A stretch of DNA of 61,033 nt, filler included, from Dimorphilus gyrociliatus (GCA_904063045.1; 4 parts of 4 records of this genome joined end to end with filler, not necessarily neighbours in it); one strand, 5' to 3'; shown: positions 6,150 to 47,412, numbered from the whole stretch's first letter. Made by a program: numbers and translations. Notes: a model not told the origin generated them from the letters alone.

Positions 6150-6640
6150 TCCTTAACAATTTTGGAAAGTTCCATCTAAATACCATACTTTTGATACTGT
6201 AAGTAAACTAACTTGTTTTCAAGTAGCAAAAATAATCACTCTTTTATTATTTTCAGGAACATTTTTTTTTCAAGAAAGCAATTATTTAATTAGAAATTTT
6301 TTCCAATTTATCATTTAGTTGCTATTTTCAACTATTACATTATTTCCAATATTTGAGAAGGGAAACTGAACATTCTCAGCAATTCATTCTAATATTTATG
6401 TCTCTCTTTCCTGTTTGTTTTGCGGTCACTTTCATTTTAAAAGTTTGTTTTAAAGTTTTTTTGGAGGGTGAATGTGATATTTAGACCCTAAAGATAAATT
6501 ATTACTTCTTTGAATGACTTTAGCAGGATATTTCATTTTCTTACTTTTAACTACATATTTCCAATTATAGAATTCTCGCCTTTTCTTTTGAAATAGACAT
6601 TCTGAATTTACCATTGCTGTCAAAATTCTCCTCAACTACA
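6150..6640 (-). mobile_element. MULE transposase remnant (FLYWCH-like N-terminus + first catalytic Asp region)
   Basis: Manual minus-strand translation gives KRVIIFAT*KQVSLLTVSKVWYLDGTF (DGTF at 6176..6165), matching the MULE RxxIFxTxxQLxLLxxSxxWYxDGTF motif. Upstream FYNWKYVVKSKKMKYPAKVIQ...HIHPP resembles a decayed FLYWCH domain. Confidence 0.65.
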
Positions 6641-6889
6641 ATTTCAAATGAATCTTCCATATTAATGTTATTTTTACTAAAATTTTTATGTATTTTATGT
6701 TTAAATTAAGTAACAATTTCCTCTTCACAATCAACATTTACTATTATACTTTTCACTGACAAATAATGTTTAAATTAAGGCCACATGGACAATAAGTGTT
6801 ATTACACAACAAGTCTGTATCATCAGCATCTGCTATTAAATAATATCTAACAATTTTGACATGCATATTTTAAATGTTCTTTGTTCCTT

Positions 6890-7240
6890 TCCCAATTCCA
6901 TAGTGGCTCCATCTATCTATTATGGACAAAGAATCTATTTCCTAGAAAATATGATTCTTTCTATAGTTTCTATCATTCTAATTTCTAGAAAATGAAAGTC
7001 TGCCCTTATATTTAGAGTCTAAATATCACAATTTCACTATCTATAATGGTCATTTAATTTGCTAGTAAATGTCCAACAAAGTGTCTATCCTCCATGTATA
7101 ATGCAGGTAACTCAAGCTAATTTATTATGAACATATATTATGGTAGACAATTGAAGTTGTAGATATTTCATAGTCTTTCCAGTATCTGACAAGTTTCAGA
7201 CTATTTATTAAAAAATTGCTCTTTTGTCAGATGTAAGCTA
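6890..7240 (-). pseudogene. Possible 2'-5'-oligoadenylate synthetase (OAS)-like C-terminal relic
   Basis: LKLVRYWKDY, then LEL / LHYTWR across a frameshift, then LSFSRN* and LSIIDR. Order and spacing resemble OAS LIRLVKHW...YALELLTVYAWE...IYWTxxY...PVILDP. Several stops; motif reading only. Confidence 0.3.
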
Positions 7241-7688: not shown

Positions 7689-8937
7689 ATGCTGTTTAAT
7701 ATTTGTGTTTTGCTACTCTATTTTTCAGTAATACAAAGTGAAAAATGTAACAATGCAACACTTGGTTTCCCGCTCATGCAATTTAATGTTTTACAATTTG
7801 ATCTTCTTACTTTGATAACTGATTTTAATATTTCTTGTAATGGTTATCTGACATCTATAACATATCTGACAACTGGTGAAGATTATCCATTTCATTTGGG
7901 AGTTTGGGAAAAAATCTCTGGTAATAAATATATTAAAAAAGATTTTAGAACAATTACAAAAACTACATCAGTGGAACAAAGAACTGTGCAATTTGAAATT
8001 CCAATGGAAATTTCAACAACTGACTATTTGGCATTTGATTTTCTACAAAATACAAAACATGGTATTGTATCCTATGTAGGAAATTCCTCTGGAAATGTAC
8101 AATTTTACAAGGTGAATACCCGTTCTATCTACATCAATTTACAGAACAATTATTTTACATATACCATTCAGATTATAACATTTCCTCAACAATCTTTGAA
8201 TCTACCAGTTTTTATGCCTGTCACCTTTAATCCACAAATCTATAACAAATATTATGCCTTTAACCTACAATTTATCCCAAAGAATGTCTACAGTAATATA
8301 TAAAACATTCTCTTAATAATGTCCTCTTTCTAAATAGTTAATGCCTTCTTTTGTAGAGAAAAATCCAGTTTGTTCAAACCAACAAAATGTTTACGGACGG
8401 GATCTAATCAGTAGAAATGATGGTGGCGGAGACTTTTCAGTTCTTTTAACTGAACATAAATTTCTCTGTCGTGGAATTTTAAGAAAAATTGAATTTTACA
8501 GAAAGCAAACAGATAAAAGTTATATTGGAATTTGGCGAAGAATGTCAGATTTGGCAGGAATTAAATATAAATTAATTACTCTAATCACATTACCAGATGG
8601 TCCAATCAACTCTGTTCAAACATTGGAATTAAATGATACAGTGTCTGTAGAGGAAAATGACATTCCATTTGTGCTGAATCATTTAAGCAAAAGTAATGCC
8701 ATAGCAAATGCCAGAAATTCATATGGAGATGCTGCAGTAAGTGTAAAAAGTAACTTTTCTCCAAAAACTAATATACAGCAACCAAACTACTAACAAATCT
8801 CCCTCTTTTTTAGGCCATATCTATGAATATTCAAAAGGAAAATATTCAAATTGGACAAATTATTGATTTACAACTATGTCAACATGCTTGTGAAAAAGGT
8901 TTCAGAACTTACTCCATTAAGTTTTATGTTGATTCAA
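7689..8937 (+). CDS. Secreted protein with two tandem similar beta-rich domains (CxGxLxxIxY/F...GxW), multi-exon, family unassigned
   Basis: Signal peptide MLFNICVLLLYFSVIQS. Domain 1 FNISCNGYLTSITY...HLGVWEK; domain 2 HKFLCRGILRKIEFY...YIGIWRR. Short intron near 8290-8337 (donor uncertain); GCA|GTAAGT...TTTTAG|GCC intron to a third exon AISMNIQKEN...YVDS. 3' end unresolved. Confidence 0.6.
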
Positions 8938-9243
8938 GTAATATATATTATATTTTCTCAACTATTATAAAATATTCATCCATCATTCTGTAAAATGACA
9001 AATCAAATGATAGATGACAAAACCATTAAAAACAGCTGCATTCAGAAAACAAAACAGTCAGTACATAGGTAAACAAATTCAAACAATTCAAATGTTAAAA
9101 TTCTAAATTGTTGAACAAGTTTAGAGTATAATTTTCAATCGTGTGAATAAGTTCAATATATTTCATTGATAAAATTTCAGCCATTTTGAATATTTGGAAA
9201 GGAAATTTTTTTTGTTTGATAACTGAGAATTTTATTTTAAAGC

Positions 9244-9852
9244 TTATAGGAAAAAAAAACATATCATATAGATATCATAAAGATGTGGTAACAACCCAGG
9301 CTGCTCTTTTATAAGCTCATAAGAGCATTTTTTGATTTTTTTCCACAATTTGTCATCTGATTTGAATTGTGGACCATGGAAAGGTGTCACATGTTCTTGA
9401 TTGGGCTGAGGTTGGGGCTCTTTGCTGGCCAATCAAGAGGATTGATATCATTCATTTGAAAGGCTCTTTTAGTTGTCCTCCCTGTGTGGCACCCAGCATT
9501 ATCTTGCTGGAAGATGGATTTCCTCCCCATTTTTGCCTCAATCTCTTCAATAACAGGGAGGACATCTGCCACAATAAAACAGCTGTAATTTTCAGCATTA
9601 AGCCTTTTCCTTATCCACCAAATTTTGAAATAAAGAAAAAATTGATGAAAATGACCAACAATATTTTGCTTATAATATTCATAAATATTATCATTTTGTC
9701 AATTTTTTTTCAATATTACATAAATATAACCCGTTTTTTTATAGAAATTTAGACCAAAAAAATAATTTACAGCGAAAAAACAATTTCAACCATTAATTAA
9801 AAACTGGCCTATTAAAATTTACAGTGTCCATTTTTTTATGAAGGTTACTTTA
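9244..9852 (-). mobile_element. Partial Tc1 element (DDE fragment joined to the 5' terminus)
   Basis: DVLPVIEEIEAKMGRKSIFQQDNAGCH...WPAKSPNLSPIKN (9387..9572) and FKSDDKLWKKIKKCSYELI. Terminus GGCCTATTAAAATTTACAGTGTCC...TTATGAAGGTTACTTTA|TA ends at 9852. Confidence 0.85.
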
Positions 9853-10550
9853 TATAGCTCACTTGCAACTGTTTGAAATACTCTTTGTTCAGATACTGTC
9901 TCATCTTTCAATTTAATGTTGCTTTCTAAATAAATTTGATACTTTCTCTAAGAAATATTAGTGGAATAGGGAATATTGCATAAAAATCATCAATGGTGTT
10001 TATTACTAATTAGATTGTGATGTATAAAGTTCTGTTTTTCTGGGTAAACTAGATGAAAAAAGCTTTGATATGGAAAAATATGGTGTGATTGTTTGGCTTT
10101 TTCTAATCATTTTTATTGAATGCAGATGTGAAAAAGTGGATTTAACAAATGGAAATGTTACATTTAAAATTGATATCTATGAGGAAAGTGATGTACATTA
10201 TATGTCAAAGGTTTAGTTTTTATCACAATTTTATCCAGAAATGAAACATTACCAATTCAATATGGAAATATAATGCACCATTCGAGAAAGATATTAATTT
10301 GTTATGGCAGTGGATATAGTAGTTTTTATGCTATTCCATATCCTTGCCAACTAAAGAGATACAATTCTCCTTATGCTACTGTTGAAATTGATATACAATT
10401 GAAAATGTTGGAAAACAGTGGACTGACTGTCTTATCTTTCACTCTGTGCCCATTTTTTCTCACTAATCCGCCTAAATAATTGGCATAAGTTAATTTTAAG
10501 AAAAAAGGGTCACAGTATGGAAATATATGACTAAAAATCTATTAGATTTA

Positions 10551-10621
10551 AAAAGTCATCGTCGTAAAAATGTGGACACCATAAATTTTGACGTGTTCCA
10601 ATTTTTACGACGATAACTTTA
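10551..10621. mobile_element. ~70-bp hairpin micro-MITE made only of Tc1-family termini
   Basis: AAAGTCATCGTCGTAAAAAT (10552..10571) pairs with ATTTTTACGACGATAACTTT (10601..10620), 1 mismatch. Ends in ACTTTA|TA like the Tc1 copies; loop has GGACACCATAAATTTTGA, a match to the TIR core GGACACCGTAAATTTTGA. Confidence 0.65.
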
Positions 10622-11226
10622 TATACTATATAATAATTTATTCCCTCCCTATAGTTACCTGATTGAGAGTTCTACAGTAGAAGGTTTATGTATGAAATGT
10701 TTCAAAAAGTATACACAATGTAAAGTTGCTATTTTCATTTACAAATCTAGGGTTAAAAACAAGTTTATTATCCAATTAGATCTATATGGCAGATTTATAG
10801 AATCAGCCTATATGCCACAAATATATATCTACTTGAGAAAATACGAGAAAGATTACAGTATTTGCGGAGCAAATTTTTATGCTACTGCATTGTGTAAACG
10901 TTTAGCATTTATTAATAGAGCTGATATATTAAAGCCTGCCCGTCTATATATATGGTTGTCTTAGTCCATCTTTGGAAAATTGCAGAGGAACATATATGTT
11001 AATGAATATATTTTATTAGTAGTCAAATTGTTTTTTTTTTTAATTATAAATCCCATTTTCTTGCATATTTTGAAGACTTAAAGAAGAAATTAAACACATA
11101 ACACCATTGATATCTTGTACAAAAGATGCTAATATCAGTTAAGTAAAAAAAACAATTGGGAAAAAATTTGCAATATTTATTCAATTCATCATCATCATCA
11201 TCATCATTGTCATCAATGATATTCGC

Positions 11227-39560: not shown

Positions 39561-40915
39561 AAAACTGCCTATGATATTTAATTTGATCCAAAAAAGGAAT
39601 TAGAGAATCAACTAAGAACATGTTATTGTTTAGATTTTGAACGTTCTTATACTTCTAGGCTGTATTATGCTTTGGATTATTACATTGATGAAATATAAAG
39701 CATTTTAGTTTTGGAATAGCTAATGGAAACTAATATCTTATTATTCATCATCCATACAAATACCCCTCCTTTCCCTATGTATCAGTATTATTCTACTAAT
39801 TACTTTACTACCCCCTATAACATCATATTTCCCCTTGATATTTATTTCCTTACCATATTATATAAACCAAGTACATATTATCTTACGCATTGTTTTTAAT
39901 AAGTATTAAAAGCATTAAGTGATACTCGATCTAAGAAGCTATTGGGCTTATATGACCATCTTCTCTATATTTCAAATTTTGATTGTATTTATTAATACCT
40001 CAAAAATAATATTTTAGTAAGAGAGTTAATAAAACCTACACTTTTGCGCATATTACGAACTGCTTAAGTATATTTAACTATTTCAGACTTCACTTTCTTG
40101 TGAGAATAAACGGGCGACTTTTTGGCCTTTATCTTAAAAGAATGCTCAGTGTCTTTTTTATAAATAGAGCACAGACCAGCACCTTTCCTTTTTATAAAAA
40201 TTCTTTATTTTTTTATCATTTCATAGACCCTGGCAGGTCTTTTGAGCTTTTAATAACTTTTGTCTGTACTTCCAAGGTCTATAAGCCTTGTTATTTTCCC
40301 CTGAATAAGATAATTATGTTTACGACACATTCGAGGTGTTTTTATATAGACTACATAAATATAATGGATGAAAAAGGATTTTTACCTTTGTATATTTTTT
40401 TTATTCTTATCTTAAAAATGCTGATTAACTGTTGAAAAGGTTTATTTGTATATTAATAAGGATTTAGTAGTCTTTTATTCTACTCTGGTAAAATTTTATC
40501 CATAAACCAAACATTAATAAATTCCCTAAGGTTTTATATGTTATTCTATTCTTGCATAGTATAAATTAAATCACTAACAAGAACCTTTATATATTAAAAG
40601 ATAGTCTCGGGGAAAGACTGGGAATATAAACGAGAATAAACCTTAAATTTCGATGCTTGTATATATAATTATCAGGTTAAACCGTTCTGTGAATTTATTA
40701 ACGGGAGATGTAGTAACCCCTTAATTATCTATTTTCCGGATTAAAATCGTATGTTAAATCCCTTTCAGTATCCTTACCTATTCCTCTAAATGGAATTATT
40801 GTCAAAATATTTGTTTATAAAATATATGGATTTTTTATTGTAGCTATTATAGAAATAGACTTAGTACTAAAAACATTCGCTATATATTAAAATATAAACA
40901 TCAAATGATAATTAT

Positions 40916-42348
40916 TTAAAGGTTTATATTCATTAATATAAAAAAGTTAGTATTATTTGCTTTAATAACAGCACATATATTGTTTGTATGTCGGTTTCTT
41001 AATATCATTAGCAACGTCATCTCTATTAAAAAATCCTTAATTTCTTCAACTAACGAAGGAGGGTATTTTGGCGTAATTTCCAAAATTATACATTTCATTA
41101 AAAACCTTAATATTGTCTGAGTATCTATAGCTTCCGGTGAATTCCACATATTTTTCAAAAAGGATGGGAAGGTACAGTTTAGTAAACTGCCTATCCCCAG
41201 TAAGCTATTATATTTATTTTTGTTTAGTGTAACATACAAATTAAAAATGGTATTTAAAAATCTTCTTCTCTCACCGAAGAGAAAGCCTCTCAAATAATAT
41301 GACATCTTTTTAAGGTCTTTAGAGTCTTTATTCATAAAAAGGTAAAATATTGATTTAGCAGCCTCTTTTGTTAGTAACCCCCTTTAATCTCTTGAAGGTA
41401 ATACTTGAGAGTATTAGACAAATCAAATAAATCATATTTATCGAAATTTACATCCTCTTTTGGAAGCTCTTCTATTTTCTTAGCAAGGGCTTTATAGGCG
41501 CTCTTTCCTCTTTTTCTAGATTTATTCATTACTGTACAGTATTCTTTTATGTACTCTATTAATATATATATTTGTGGGGAAACGTGGAAATAATCGTTTT
41601 TCAAGCTTTGACTGTAAAAAAAATTATTAAATAAAGCTTTAGCTTTCTGTGATAAATTTCGTTTAGGATTATTATCTAGATATTTTTTGAGCTGGTATTG
41701 AGAAAGCTTATATATTTTGGTCTCTCCATAAATATCAAGGCCACTTGATTTTCCATAGTCTTTTTGTTTTAGATTTTCAAAAAGATCGAAATCTGTTTTA
41801 AATTTGTGATGTTTGTTTAATTTTCCAGAATTAACTGCAATTCCCTCATATTTCTTGTTAAAAATATCTTTATCATCAGAAAAGATGATCTCACAATCGA
41901 AAGAATTTTTACTCTTGTGTTTTAAATTATTAGTAATCGATCTATTATATTTTATTTTATCAAGAGGGACATTTAGTTCTTATTTAGCTTCTATTTTCGT
42001 AATTTCAATGTCTTCATCCTTGTTTATGTGAATGGCTGATGTCCAAGAATCTTCATCTTCGTTTATATACATGTTTAAAGACAAGGAGTCTTCATCTTCT
42101 GCTTGTTGATACTTTTTTTTGCCTATGGTAAAGTTCTTATAACTAACTAATAACTTTTTTGATACAGAACATGCTTCATATTTATGTTTAGATGTCTCTA
42201 CTTCTTTTTCCTGTAATGAATGCTTATGACCAATTAGCTCGTTATTCACAAAAAGCTGATTATAATCAGCAGATTCTGATGACTTGTGGCTATTTTTCAT
42301 AGTTAAATTCTCAAAATAACGAATAAGATTTTGTATTTTAGGAGTCAT
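40916..42348 (-). pseudogene. RhoGAP-domain gene (~477 codons) interrupted by one TAA and one homopolymer frameshift
   Basis: ORFs 41980..42348 and 41371..41604 share one frame, open between them except TAA 41980..41982. Adding one G to the G5 run (41378..41382) joins YDLFDLSNTLKYYLQEIKGG to LLTKEAAKSIFYLF...GIGSLLNCTFPSFL (RhoGAP DxxxxxxxLKxYLRELxxPLLT pattern). The catalytic Arg region (MNKSRKRG) is divergent. Confidence 0.6.
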
Positions 42349-42454
42349 TAGGGGATCAATCTTAATTTTTTCTTAACCTTGCACCTGAAACAAGTGTTTC
42401 AAATTTATTTTTTTATTTTAAAAATTAAAGAAAAATGTACTTCAAAAAAGTCAT

Positions 42455-42830
42455 CTTTTTTACCAATTTAGAATTTGATATCACAAATCATAAAAATTTA
42501 TATTTTCTGTAAATTTAACATTAAATTTTATTTATAAGTTTTTTTTTAAAGAATTTGTAAATTTGATATAAAAATTAGAATTTGATATCAAAAATCTATA
42601 TTTTCTATAAATTTAATATTAAATTTTATTTAATCGTTTCTTTAAAGAATTTGTAAATTTGATATAAAAAACCAAAAATCTATATTTTTATTATTTCAAA
42701 AAATTCGTCTTTTAACCAATTTAGAATTTGATATTAAAAATCACAAATCATAAAAATTTATATTTTCTGTAAATTTAACATTAAATTTTATTTTTATTAT
42801 TTCAAAAAATTTGTAAATTTTATTAATTTA
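42455..42830. repeat. AT-rich imperfect direct/mosaic repeats (~60-120-bp units)
   Basis: ACCAATTTAGAATTTGATAT...TCACAAATCATAAAAATTTATATTTTCTGTAAATTTAACATTAAATTTTATTT at ~42462 and ~42716; TTTAAAGAATTTGTAAATTTGATATAAAAA at ~42545 and ~42641. Confidence 0.8.
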
Positions 42831-44445
42831 GAATAGTAATAAAAATAGATGATTAGTTAAACACATTGCTTTTTACTACAAAAACAATAAAAAATTAAAT
42901 TTAAAATACTCATTCGTATAAATTTATTAAATTTCAATGTGTTTTATATCCAAAACGTTACAATTAAAACAAAAGGCTGGTTTCTGAAAAAAACTAATCT
43001 TAATTTTAAAAAACGTGATTTTTAGAGATACTATTATAAAATAATACTATATAATAGTTTTATAATTAAATACGAAGGTGTATAACCAATTATAGGTTCA
43101 TCTACTTCCTTAACAATATTTAAATCAGTTTCTTAATATTAATCTTATTAAATTAGGTTGAAATTATTCCATATACTCTATTTTCATAAAAAAACTTTAT
43201 GATAAATTTTTATGACCTAAATCTAGGTCATAGTAATAATAATAATAATGCCTTTTTACTATTTCTTTTATAATTCTGTATTAGACCTCATCTTGATTAA
43301 ACAGATGAAATTATCTTTCCTATAAGTTTGCTTTCTTTAAAGTAAACATGGATAAGAAAATACCATTTGATCAGCATTATTTTGATATTATAAATTATAT
43401 AAAAGGTTTAAAAACATACAGATTTTGGATTCTGCTATCACGTTCTAAGTCATATATCAGGAACAACAAATGCTTGTGAGGTTGGTATTGAGTGTTAACC
43501 ACTTTCATAAAAACTAGTAAATTAAATAAAAAAAGTTAATTTAATGTTTATAAAAGACGGAGGAGTCAATTTGAGCTTTCTTCTGCTATCTGGAAGAAGA
43601 TCATATTGTAAAATTTTAGTTCAATTTTAAATATGAACCTATTTTATTTTATACTTTAACAGCTACGAGAACTATAGTATAGAATACTGCAAGAAATTTT
43701 TCTAGCGAAGAAGTAGATAAAATCCATGATAATTAGTAAAAATATCAAATCAATTTATTTTAAAGTCATATTCGAACTTAACGGATAATTTTAAGGGGGG
43801 TAATATTAAAATATATTCTAGTGGTATTTAAATAAGGTTTCATTCTTTTTATATTTATAAGAAAAAATAAGAATGTTTTTTATTCCTTTCTAAAAAAAAT
43901 TAATGTCCTAACCATTAAAACTGTCTAAACTACTAAAATCATTAATTATTAATTTGTAGAAATAAAAAGTATTTTCCATTACTAAAGTGGGAGATTGGAA
44001 TATCAGGCCATTTTACTCAAAAGTACATGATAAAATAACAAATTGACATATTTTTTCTAATTAAGAGTTTATATGTTGAAAATAACACTATATGGATTCA
44101 TTCTGAAACGTAATAAATCAGGAATATAATTATCTCAAAGGGAAAAAATAAAAAATCTGCTAATGACCGATAATCACATGTTTAAATTAATATTACCAAA
44201 AATAGTAATTTAATACTTTTTAATTTTTGTAACAAAAAACTAAAACAGTCTATTTTATATTAAAATTTTTATAAAATAAAAATCTCGTAATAAACTATTA
44301 AATAAGATAATTAATTTGTATTTTATTAAATATGATTGATTCTTTATTATGTGTTAAAAGCTGTTTGGTAAATGGAAACATCTGAAACGAAACAATTTCA
44401 GATTAACACCTACAAAACCAATATAAACCACATCTATATCTGGAA

Positions 44446-45558
44446 ATGTATAGTAAAACATTATTAGTACAATCTATCCCTGGTCTATTAATTTCACTAG
44501 TAGGACTATCGATATCTGGCATTTTACTTGAAAGGTCATTAAAAATGGAATATGCTAACAGTTATCCTTTAATAATGATAATAGATTGCGTGTTAGCATT
44601 TAAAGGTAATTTTGAACTTATTTTGGCTCTTTATTTATCATCTTTAAGTCATAACAGTTCTTTTCCTTTTTATAAATATGCTATTAATTCTTCTTGTATA
44701 GTATTTTTTCAATCTATTATTGTAGGAATAAGTGTAGGATTAGCAGCAATTGCTATTAAATTAATAGAAGGTGTAATTTCAATTAACTTAGCTATAAGAC
44801 TGTTGTCTACTTGTTTGGTTTCTTGTGTCTTTTCAACGTTAATAATGATAATTGTTATACTTCTATGTATAAAAATATCTAAAATATTAGCAATAGACCC
44901 CGATAATGTAATTTTACCAACAATATCAGCATTTGCAGAGATGTTCTATATTCTATTCTTAAGGGAGAGTATTAAAATTGTAAACAAAACACCTATTTTT
45001 ACAATAATAATAATATGTTTATTGATAATACTTCTTCTATTTACAGCTGTGCTACTTTGGGAAGATGATACCAGCTCTATTCCAATTCAGCCTGTAGAAT
45101 TACTAATAATAACATATATACTTACAGTTATAAGCAGCTCAATAATTCAATATTTTAGCAAACATTATAACATGATTGGTGCGGTATCGCTTATATTTTG
45201 CAGTTTAAGCGGTGCTATTTCATATATACACTTAAATAAATTGATAACTTCAATCAGAAGTAGAATTACATTTGATAATAGAAAATGTTTAATAACTTTG
45301 TGTATTATTTCATCAATTATAATTACTATGTATATTGCATTTTTGAAGTTTATATCAGATATGAACGTTATTTTTTGTTTTTTAATAGCCTTTTTATTTG
45401 TAATTAATGTAGTTTTATTAATAAAACTGACCGAATTTGCGCTAAATTTTTATAAAAAGGAGGAAAAGGCTGGATCTATCACTTTACCTTTACTTGGGTC
45501 TTTTTCAGATGTTATTGGAACTGCAATGCTATTGTTTATTTATAGAGTTGCAGCTTAG
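44446..45558 (+). CDS. SLC41/MgtE-family divalent cation (Mg2+) transporter
   Basis: QSIPGLLISLVG, LAFKGNFELILALYLSS (SLC41 LGLKGNLEMTLASRLST), IDPDNVILPTISAFAE, ITLPLLGSFSDVIGT; about 10 hydrophobic segments; intronless. Confidence 0.88.
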   Translation: MYSKTLLVQSIPGLLISLVGLSISGILLERSLKMEYANSYPLIMIIDCVLAFKGNFELILALYLSSLSHNSSFPFYKYAINSSCIVFFQSIIVGISVGLAAIAIKLIEGVISINLAIRLLSTCLVSCVFSTLIMIIVILLCIKISKILAIDPDNVILPTISAFAEMFYILFLRESIKIVNKTPIFTIIIICLLIILLLFTAVLLWEDDTSSIPIQPVELLIITYILTVISSSIIQYFSKHYNMIGAVSLIFCSLSGAISYIHLNKLITSIRSRITFDNRKCLITLCIISSIIITMYIAFLKFISDMNVIFCFLIAFLFVINVVLLIKLTEFALNFYKKEEKAGSITLPLLGSFSDVIGTAMLLFIYRVAA

Positions 45559-45640
45559 AAAACCATATTGTAGATTATTACCAAAGTTTATTATTAAATT
45601 TTTAGTATGTATGTAAATTTGCTTTTCAAGGAATAATAAA

Positions 45641-46543
45641 TTACGATGTTTTATAAAGGTTAAATTTCTTTATAATTTGATTAGAAACATCTTCTGCATC
45701 AAGTCTTATGTCATTAATATTACCTCTCCCTAACTTACACCAACCAGAAAAAAATACTGGTTTTTCGGATTTCCATTTCTTTAAATTAGGCTTTTTATAT
45801 CCAATTTCTGATAAAATATCATCACAAACAATCTCTCCTTTGGAATGTGTAACTAATTTTTTGTCATCTCCTATTTCCTCTATTCTAATAGGATATGTAT
45901 CAAAAATAAAATTTACGAAATTCGTTTTTTGTATTAAATTAATTAAGAAGTTTCTTTTTTGTAAAATTTTAAGTTTTAATTCACTTTTGGAACTCCCCTT
46001 TAAAGTAAATAAAGTTTCCTTTTGATGACTTTTAAATTTTCTATTAATATAATTAAAAGTTTTCTTTAATAGAAAATTAGAAAACCTAGCCTTTTCTAGT
46101 GAAGCTCTACACAAAACTTCTATTTTTTTATAATTCTTTTTCAAAGACTCTCTAATTCTATCTAAGGTTACATCTCCACCACCAATAATAACCAATGTCT
46201 TGTTCTCTTCTTCTTTTTTATTATTTTTATTTTTTAATATTTTTTTATCACTAATTAAATTTCCACCTTCAATTTCTAATTTTCTTTTTTTCCCTCCAAT
46301 TGCAACAACACTAGCATCGTAATTTTTAGATAAATTTTTAAAATCACCAGAATTTACTCTTTTTTTATAAACTTGAATATTTTTTGAATTAAAATTAATA
46401 CTTGGTTTTAAAGAGTCTTTAGAAAATTTATTTAATGAATTTAAAGGCTTGTTCTTCTCAAAAACATCAATATTAATAATATTTGGTAGATACTTTGATA
46501 CGTAATAAGCAGATGGTCCACCTCCGATAACACATAATTTCAT
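45641..46543 (-). CDS. ARH1: NADPH:adrenodoxin (ferredoxin) oxidoreductase, reduced ~300-aa form
   Basis: MKLCVIGGGPSAYYVSKYL...IDVFEK (FAD-binding), YDASVVAIG, LVIIGGGDVTLD (NADPH-binding GxGNVAxD variant), C-terminal GWCKLGRGNINDIRLDA (GWxKxGxxGxIxxTxxDA). ATG at 46543 is preceded by CCC. Confidence 0.75.
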   Translation of the reverse strand: MKLCVIGGGPSAYYVSKYLPNIINIDVFEKNKPLNSLNKFSKDSLKPSINFNSKNIQVYKKRVNSGDFKNLSKNYDASVVAIGGKKRKLEIEGGNLISDKKILKNKNNKKEEENKTLVIIGGGDVTLDRIRESLKKNYKKIEVLCRASLEKARFSNFLLKKTFNYINRKFKSHQKETLFTLKGSSKSELKLKILQKRNFLINLIQKTNFVNFIFDTYPIRIEEIGDDKKLVTHSKGEIVCDDILSEIGYKKPNLKKWKSEKPVFFSGWCKLGRGNINDIRLDAEDVSNQIIKKFNLYKTS

Positions 46544-46751
46544 GGGCACATTTTTTATAACATATAGAAAAATTTAAATTCTCTTACATTATATTTGTAT
46601 ATATTTATTATAAAAAAGTAGTAAACAGAAAATCAGTCTTATTTTGTTGATTTAGTATTAAATCATAAATTTATTATTTTTTTTTAAATAAAATTAGAAT
46701 TTCTTCGAACTTTTCTTAAAAAAAACTTTTTTAATTATTTTAACCCCTTTT

Positions 46752-46883
46752 ATGAAAAAAATCAATACTTTTTTAAAATTAAGTGACGATGAAAAACAAA
46801 AAGATATAGAAAATGCAATAAAAGATATGAAATTTGAAGAATTAGACGATATTTATGATTTTTTAAAGTTGTATAAAAAATAA
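46752..46883 (+). CDS. Hypothetical 43-aa protein (MKKINTFLKLSDDEKQKDIENAIKDMKFEELDDIYDFLKLYKK)
   Basis: Below the ORF-track cutoff. ATG preceded by CCCCTTTT; charged helical composition and purine-rich codon pattern like the neighbouring genes. Confidence 0.5.
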   Translation: MKKINTFLKLSDDEKQKDIENAIKDMKFEELDDIYDFLKLYKK

Positions 46884-46984
46884 TTTTTTTTTTGTTTTTT
46901 TAATAAAATTTTAATTTTTTGTAAAAATTTCTACTTTGATAGAATTTATTAAAAAATATACTTAAGTAAAATTTTACCAATAAA

Positions 46985-46988
46985 GGGG
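46985..46988 (+). promoter_or_regulatory. Microsporidian-type CCC/GGG start-proximal motif (also at 46744..46747 +, 46544..46546 -, 42351..42354 -)
   Basis: GGGG-T-ATG (HSF), CCCC-TTTT-ATG (small ORF), CCC-ATG (ARH1) and CCCC-TA-ATG (RhoGAP), in a contig where G/C runs are rare. CCC/GGG-like signals close to start codons are a described feature of microsporidian genes. Confidence 0.65.
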
Positions 46989-46989
46989 T

Positions 46990-47412
46990 ATGGATAATAT
47001 AAATCAGCAAAATCCAAATGTTTCTAAATTTATTAAAAATTTGTACAAAATAGTTAGTGACGACTCTATAAATGAGATAAAATGGAATCAAAATGGTGAT
47101 GGCATTATCATTTTAGACAGAGACAACTTTGTAAAGAATATATTACCGCTATTATCTAAAACAAGAGAATACTCTTCCTTTGTAAGGCAATTGAACTACT
47201 ATGGGTTTAATAAAACCAAAGGACTTTATGAGGAAGGTGATGAATATATCAGTCCCCATTTTAGAATGAATAGAGAAGATTACTTAATTCATATTAAAAG
47301 AGAAAACGGAAAACAAAAAAATACAGAAATAGAAAAATATAAAAACGATAGTGAAAAACTAACACAAGATTTAGACACCCTTAATAACAATAATATAGAG
47401 TTACGCAATCAA
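46990..47412 (+). CDS. HSF1: Heat shock transcription factor (HSF DNA-binding domain + start of coiled coil), truncated by contig end
   Basis: SKFIKNLYKIVSDDSINEIKWNQNGDGIIILDRDNFVKNILPLLSKTREYSSFVRQLNYYGFNK...YISPHFRMNREDYLIHIKR; ATG preceded by GGGGT. Confidence 0.92.

Follow-up and report, generated by a model that had tools for sequence, protein, structure and literature searches.

The window considered here is a stretch of 61,033 nucleotides, filler included, in which four parts of the Dimorphilus gyrociliatus assembly (GCA_904063045.1) are joined end to end, and the piece under study occupies its positions 39561-47412 (7,852 bases with no N and a guanine-cytosine (GC) content of 24.2%). 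The gene map of the piece was drawn from the listing of open reading frames (ORFs), from Pfam matches and from three-frame translation. It comprises an intact gene of an SLC41/MgtE-type transporter, a short flavoprotein gene assigned to Arh1, the 5' part of an HSF-type transcription factor gene and a disrupted ORF with weak RhoGAP similarity. Microsporidia are intracellular fungal-type parasites, and the piece is very probably a fragment of the nuclear genome of one of them, co-sequenced and co-assembled with the animal, and not animal DNA. A microsporidian fragment among animal contigs had been proposed in an earlier note made from the sequence of the window, and the proposal is now supported by the matches and the tree of the SLC41 protein, by the linkage of HSF with SLC41 and by the type of Arh1.

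The SLC41/MgtE-type gene (44446..45558, + strand) was recognised with Pfam and phmmer, is intact and encodes a putative divalent-cation (Mg2+) transporter of 370 amino acids. The Pfam family MgtE (PF01769) is matched in two stretches, that is as a duplicated integral-membrane domain, with 29.4 bits against a cut-off of 27.6. The protein aligns over its full length with proteins named SLC41A or MgtE (best E 1e-57) and its Atlas features lead to MgtE clusters (0.94), which confirms the gene call of the earlier note. An exhaustive phmmer search against 1.84 billion representatives returned 124 matches in total. Those at the top (E 1e-57 to 1e-41) have about 385 amino acids, and where they carry a name it is a microsporidian one; as far as about E 1e-16 all the named matches belong to Microsporidia, namely Hamiltosporidium magnivora, H. 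tvaerminnensis, Spraguea lophii, Gurleya vavrai, Pancytospora epiphaga, Enteropsectra breve, Nucleospora cyclopteri and Enterospora canceri. Weaker matches, from E 1e-13 on, are to the fungi Parasitella and Mortierella (both Mucoromycota) and Neocallimastix, to the aphelid Paraphelidium and to the ichthyosporean Amoebidium. The closest identity among these representatives does not exceed about 37%, the exact-protein look-up of SLC41 gave no record, and neither SLC41 nor HSF retrieved a relative in scans of JGI metagenome contigs. One of the database entries met in this search, KAL6122692.1 of Nucleospora cyclopteri (384 amino acids), is called a 'ribosomal protein'; it shows a full-length SLC41/MgtE alignment, with E 8e-20 to the protein of the piece, and its name therefore looks mis-annotated.

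A maximum-likelihood tree of 32 SLC41 proteins was built under the site-heterogeneous model LG+C20+F+G4. The protein of the piece and 22 other proteins, all named Microsporidia included, form one clade with a support of 99/98, and the aphelid, the fungi and the ichthyosporean fall outside of it. Within the clade the protein is placed with those of Spraguea, Hamiltosporidium and Gurleya (support 86/81). Database search and phylogeny had been suggested as a check on the microsporidian origin, and both have led to Microsporidia, as best matches and as a clade respectively.

The HSF-type gene (46990..47412, + strand) starts 446 bp beyond the Arh1 gene and is truncated where the piece ends, so that its 5' part is present and the oligomerisation region falls beyond the edge. 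The winged-helix DNA-binding domain (Pfam HSF_DNA-bind) occupies residues 14-104 and covers profile positions 1-99 of 100 with E 1.7e-22, in agreement with the HSF call made before. The HSF located near SLC41 in Hamiltosporidium tvaerminnensis shares 45% identity with it over 130 amino acids (tblastn) and 48% over 110 (tblastx), more than the 40% of the single match obtained in the word-indexed search, a 216-amino-acid protein on a contig of 39% GC. The latter is encoded at 6576-7226 of a compact contig (L001/L002; Logan SRR22198269 and SRR23617271), where it stands next to a LITAF-like gene and to one that encodes 1,857 amino acids, and a kinship of this contig to the piece is not obvious. 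The near-blank outcome of the word-indexed protein searches indicates that the proteins of the piece are highly divergent.

As in the piece, HSF and SLC41 are 0.2-7 kb apart in four other loci, with varying order and orientation. In Hamiltosporidium tvaerminnensis it is located 4.8 kb upstream of SLC41 (L003:2155-3156 and 8001-9167), in a Logan contig of 24% GC the two genes are 6.7 kb apart (L005:451-1323 and 8045-9244), in Enterospora canceri they are adjacent and divergent (L008:9144-9842 and 10001-11161), and in Gurleya vavrai (GCA_052575965.1) an HSF-like ORF and SLC41 are separated by 3.2 kb (L007:6415-6768, - strand, and 10001-11155). The HSF-like frame of Gurleya vavrai, at which no gene has been called, shows 37% identity over 118 amino acids to the HSF of the piece.

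The gene between SLC41 and HSF (45641..46543, - strand) encodes a protein of 300 amino acids, which was assigned to Arh1 (ferredoxin/adrenodoxin reductase) of the short microsporidian type on the basis of its motifs and of a published alignment. Its true ATG is at 46543, two codons within the listed GTG ORF, and the gene is convergent with SLC41 across a gap of 82 bp. Pfam matches are Pyr_redox_2 and NAD_binding_7. Four Arh1 motifs were defined and five microsporidian Arh1 proteins were aligned by Freibert et al. 2017 in Supplementary Fig. 1a (PMC5216125). The flavin adenine dinucleotide (FAD) motif [VI]-[VI]-G-x-G-P is present as VIGGGP at residue 5, straight after 'MKLC', and the nicotinamide adenine dinucleotide phosphate (NADP) motif G-x-G-N-V-x(2)-D-x(2)-R is present as GGGDVTLDRIR at residue 121, with D in place of N as in the Encephalitozoon rows (GMGDVSMD). 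A second FAD motif, G-L-x-R-x-G-x-A-P-D-H-x(3)-[KR], was not found in the 300-amino-acid protein, and GLxRxGxAPDH is stated to be not conserved in Microsporidia (PMC5216125). The strict form of the remaining FAD motif, G-W-x(3)-G-x(2)-G, is absent and is represented at residue 267 by GWCKLGRGN, a form shorter by one residue; all five microsporidian rows have the short GW form, for example GWCKD-AKGN (T. hominis) and GWARH-PRGN (PMC5216125). The protein of the piece has no presequence, no C-terminal extension and no CxxC.

In comparison with the Arh1 proteins of T. hominis, E. cuniculi, E. intestinalis, N. ceranae and E. bieneusi (PMC5216125), the same start MK-x-C/A-[VI]-I-G-x-GP is observed, and MKVCVIGGGP of E. 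cuniculi is comparable to the MKLC and VIGGGP of the piece. The loss of GLxRxGxAPDH is common to both sides, GxG[ND]VxxD is kept, the short GW motif is followed by GN, and the proteins end about 20-25 residues beyond the GW motif. The closest local strings, VFEKN..PL.SL and GWCK, are shared with T. hominis. The derived deletions and motif changes are common to Trachipleistophora, Encephalitozoon, Nosema and Enterocytozoon, whereas the rows of yeast, Neurospora, human and Cryptosporidium lack them. At the level of the whole sequence, the protein is too divergent for a significant database match. A stretch rich in K, N and E (KNKNNKKEEENK) occupies residues 100-115, just ahead of the NADP motif, and a similar low-complexity insert (KNKNNEENEN) is present at the same site of T. 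hominis Arh1 in the published alignment.

The families nearest to the 300-amino-acid protein by sequence are GltD, NfnA and ferredoxin reductase (PDB NfnA with E 0.0017, NCBIfam GltD-like down to E 2e-7), and the adrenodoxin reductase 1cjc of PDB gives E 0.36. Atlas clusters are those of 'putative ferredoxin-NADP reductase' (0.94), the Atlas features of the C-terminal half being non-specific; a PDB search with the C-terminus alone gave a chance match only, and the exact-protein look-up gave no record. The motif set in its microsporidian form makes the assignment to Arh1 of the microsporidian type a well-founded one as far as sequence can carry it, and the adrenodoxin reductase of about 300 amino acids named in the earlier note is borne out by this published pattern. 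The ferredoxin/ferredoxin-reductase pair which had been claimed along with it is represented by the reductase, and no ferredoxin (Yah1) gene is located on the piece. In Microsporidia, a mitosomal Arh1 would pass electrons via the ferredoxin Yah1 to iron-sulfur cluster assembly (PMC5216125).

Thioredoxin reductase (TrxR) was considered for the 300-amino-acid protein in view of the gene at the corresponding place in Enterospora canceri and rejected, because CxxC is missing, identity amounts to 30% over 89 amino acids only, and the Arh1 motifs are present. A well-conserved TrxR is encoded by Enterospora canceri (L008:11859-12815, - strand), two genes downstream of SLC41 and on the opposite strand, where Arh1 is located in the piece. 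This protein is of similar size (318 amino acids), belongs to the same flavoprotein superfamily and corresponds to it in position and strand with respect to SLC41, but it is a clear TrxR, with E 8e-76 to PDB TrxR chains and a CAVC active site. The matching positions of TrxR and Arh1 are probably a coincidence.

A further, tentative line of evidence is provided by the sequences in front of the start codons. In several Microsporidia a CCC-like or GGG-like motif following an A/T-rich tract and 5' untranslated regions (UTRs) shorter than 7 nt were described by Peyretaillade et al. 2009 (PMC2803860). In the piece GGGG is located one base upstream of the ATG of HSF (46985..46988, + strand), CCC directly upstream of the ATG of Arh1 (46544..46546, - strand; ggg on the + strand), and CCCC two bases upstream of the ATG of an ORF of 122 amino acids (42351..42354, - strand; gggg on the + strand). 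Three of the four starts thus have CCC or GGG within 6 nt upstream, and three is also what is left of the four start codons for which the signal had been claimed. As a background, such a triplet stands within 12 nt of 18 of the 219 ATGs of the piece (8%); set against this background, chance occurrence at three of four starts is unlikely (about 0.002 by our own arithmetic, with n of four genes). Called starts of related microsporidian loci are enriched likewise, for example with 8 of 12 against a background of 9% in one locus (L009) and with 2 of 3 against one of 4% in Spraguea. The genes of the piece appear to be transcribed from CCC/GGG signals beside the start codons after an A/T-rich tract, in the role presumed for these signals here.

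The same locus was found in 13 public runs from 7 studies with 97-100% identity. The runs carry three organism labels or are marine metatranscriptomes and a marine sediment metagenome, and the three labelled organisms may be close relatives of one another. Four runs (X1, X2, X4 and X5) were compared with the piece over 41413-47412: the contigs of X1 and X2 are identical to it, about 1% of positions differ in X4, a metatranscriptome of marine origin, and about 2% in X5. A contig of X4 is colinear with SLC41 over 44509-45595 (1,087 nt), a contig of X1 spans SLC41 and Arh1 over 44520-46646 (2,127 nt) with zero differences, and the HSF contigs of X1, X2 and X4 have about 1,120-1,180 nt and extend about 740 nt past the end of the piece. 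No intron-type joint is present in the public-run contigs colinear with SLC41, Arh1 and HSF, the metatranscriptome X4 included, which upholds the intron poverty noticed earlier. Two listed joints were rejected as introns; their sides have 21 nt and they skip 1.1 and 3.0 kb across genes, which suggests artefacts.

In X1 the depth reaches 261 over HSF, 41 over SLC41 and Arh1 and 2-5 over the left part, and in X2 it is 46 over HSF and 21 over SLC41. Such an uneven depth between neighbours in X1 looks like RNA and not genomic DNA. Several contigs start 0-26 nt from ATGs (44447, 46992, 46993, 46975 and 44420), which fits short 5' UTRs, although contigs cannot define transcript ends. Among the distinct strain variants of SLC41, 13 of 15 are synonymous, against 22% expected for random changes, which indicates purifying selection in a living population. 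The organism is present in marine samples as several strains.

About half of the piece is coding. The spacers are long and AT-rich, with GC falling to 13.5-15% in the GC profile, in accordance with the long AT-rich intergenic tracts reported before. A genome of the large type, also suggested in the earlier note, is plausible in view of the half-coding layout and of a spacer of 2.1 kb, but 8 kb are too short to settle it. This spacer (42349-44445, GC 13.5-25%), to the left of SLC41, contains AT-rich imperfect direct repeats (42458..42823) with units of about 72 and about 37 nt, a spacing of 96-162 nt and five repeat families. Contigs of X1 with a depth of 65-107 match only about 39 nt of the spacer repeats (42458-42823 and about 43213-43412) and then continue with unlike sequence. 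The repeat units are probably dispersed elsewhere in the same parasite genome; alternatively, the contigs with the 39-nt matches may stem from an abundant unrelated transcript. The left 1.35 kb (39561..40915, GC 25-29%) has no recognisable gene, with a single ORF of 111 amino acids that lacks a Pfam match, and gave no tblastx match to the compared microsporidian loci. No tRNA or Rfam family was found across 39561-47412.

The disrupted ORF (40916..42348, - strand), detected by three-frame translation, has about 470 codons and weak RhoGAP similarity. It consists of three segments, 42348-41983, 41976-41374 (in the same frame, after a TAA at 41980-41982) and 41383-40916 (after a frameshift at the G5 run 41378-41382). 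Membership in RhoGAP was judged by whether the domain passes the family threshold and has an arginine finger; the Pfam matches score 17.8 and 15.1 bits against a cut-off of 24.5 and cover profile positions 23-68 of 148 only, and a PDB sequence search with the pieces of the ORF gave no match. The RhoGAP gene of the earlier note is a weak call, with scores of 15-18 bits and a frame broken twice. The TAA is kept unchanged in a contig of X1 over 41906-42133, where the depth is only 2-5. The frameshift (41370-41390, - strand) falls exactly at the G5 homopolymer, which is followed by TTACTAAC; this site lies outside the comparison with public contigs, which began at 41413, and a homopolymer-length assembly error at 41378-41382 is as likely as true decay. 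The ORF as a whole is either a pseudogene or a product of assembly errors, and may be a RhoGAP gene. An intron at the frame change, where a TACTAAC string occurs, was rejected, since its length would be about 14 nt and a simple in-frame TAA accounts for the other break.

The SLC41 result is supported by three independent lines, the linkage of HSF with SLC41, the microsporidian type of Arh1 and, tentatively, the start-codon signals. The piece would accordingly be read as a cobiont or contaminant contig that carries ordinary microsporidian housekeeping genes: SLC41/MgtE, Arh1, HSF and possibly RhoGAP. Several observations weigh against a microsporidian origin. The branch of the SLC41 protein is long (1.55), and the approximately unbiased (AU) test does not reject a position as sister to the other 22 proteins instead of one nested among them (p 0.155); its grouping with Microsporidia appears solid, and its exact placement within or beside the sampled set does not. 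The SLC41 start has no CCC/GGG signal. The whole-protein word-indexed search with Arh1 gave nothing at E 0.001 and only a 26-bit match at E 10, and the single-sequence AlphaFold (AF2) model of this protein is unusable, with a predicted local distance difference test (pLDDT) score of 34, so that the Arh1 call rests on motifs and the published alignment. There is no ribosomal RNA (rRNA), polar-tube, spore-wall or nucleotide-transporter gene on the piece, and the microsporidian call thus rests on three proteins and gene order.

If the piece is microsporidian, the sequenced animal need not be the host, and the DNA could come from gut content or prey, from an infected epibiont or other parasite, from spores in seawater or from cross-sample contamination. 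Sequence of 97-100% identity is present in runs with three organism labels as well as in metatranscriptomes and sediment of marine origin, which places the locus in the environment and does not tie it to one labelled organism. On the other hand, over the genic parts the 100%-identical contigs of X1 and X2 have a sizeable and uneven depth (HSF 261 and 46, SLC41 41 and 21), which looks like active expression and not like traces of spores. Expression-like depth argues against trace spores but does not identify the host, and a source other than an infection of the sequenced animal is held to be rather unlikely.

A segment of microsporidian origin could also have been integrated into the animal genome by horizontal transfer. 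Shortness of the contig, the geneless left 1.35 kb with its slightly higher GC and the one broken gene, the RhoGAP-like ORF, are what such an insert could account for. Nevertheless, no animal-like sequence, repeat or junction was found within the piece, three of its genes are intact, purifying selection acts on SLC41, transcripts appear to start beside signals of the microsporidian type, and besides the labelled organisms there are marine metatranscriptomes and sediment that contain the sequence. Integration into the host genome is therefore very unlikely, and the piece would belong to a free parasite genome. Another AT-rich, intron-poor eukaryote (an amoebozoan, a metamonad, an aphelid or rozellid, an early 'short-branch' microsporidian or a nucleomorph), which resembles Microsporidia by composition or long branches, is hardly credible: the long SLC41 branch, the sister position permitted by the AU test and identities to known Microsporidia of only 36-48% speak for it, but they are set against the 99/98 clade, which a site-heterogeneous model yields and to which neither the aphelid nor the fungi nor the ichthyosporean belong, against the HSF-SLC41 linkage common to four microsporidian genomes and against the derived deletions and motif changes of Arh1 as in Trachipleistophora, Encephalitozoon, Nosema and Enterocytozoon.

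Within the microsporidian reading, the new element is the lineage, as judged from best identities of about 37% for SLC41 and 45-48% for HSF; with best protein identities of 36-48%, no close relative has been sequenced. The balance tips slightly towards a deeply divergent lineage within canonical Microsporidia which has not been sequenced so far and which is both common and active in transcription across marine samples, as judged from three organism labels, plankton metatranscriptomes and sediment. It would be present there as at least three strains, and a large part of its genome could perhaps be recovered from the assembly and the runs. If this is true, a new host-parasite association could emerge from an animal assembly and public runs, and mining of the same assemblies could give the genome of a poorly sampled marine branch together with its host range. 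In the animal assembly the contig calls for removal or a flag, since its genes would otherwise be mis-assigned to the animal. The linkage of HSF with SLC41 and the motif pattern of the short Arh1 would be usable as markers for microsporidian contigs where similarity is too weak for routine searches. It can be stated that the main value of the piece is that of a lead to an unsampled marine microsporidian genome and of a decontamination flag.

The recovery of microsporidian contigs from host assemblies is an established practice, and 40 genomes have been obtained from arthropods of the Darwin Tree of Life (PMC12558613). As in that work, parasite contigs are found here in an animal project and are told by composition and microsporidian best matches; in contrast to it, a single 7.9-kb contig is at hand, apparently marine and known without small-subunit rRNA or a genome bin. 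Among known genomes, those of Hamiltosporidium, Gurleya and Spraguea have the nearest SLC41 proteins (33-36% identity by phmmer and 35-37% by tblastn), placed in the same subclade of the tree. The GC content of the piece is close to that of the Hamiltosporidium, Spraguea and Gurleya loci, and a GC of 23-25%, a wide gene spacing and the location of HSF near SLC41 are features it has in common with H. tvaerminnensis, H. magnivora, Gurleya vavrai and Spraguea lophii. Identity to these genera is low, however; HSF, SLC41 and the genes around them are arranged in another order and orientation there, and the neighbour is not Arh1. With its 2.1-kb spacer and half-coding layout, the piece is organised like the loci of Hamiltosporidium and Gurleya and unlike those of Encephalitozoon.

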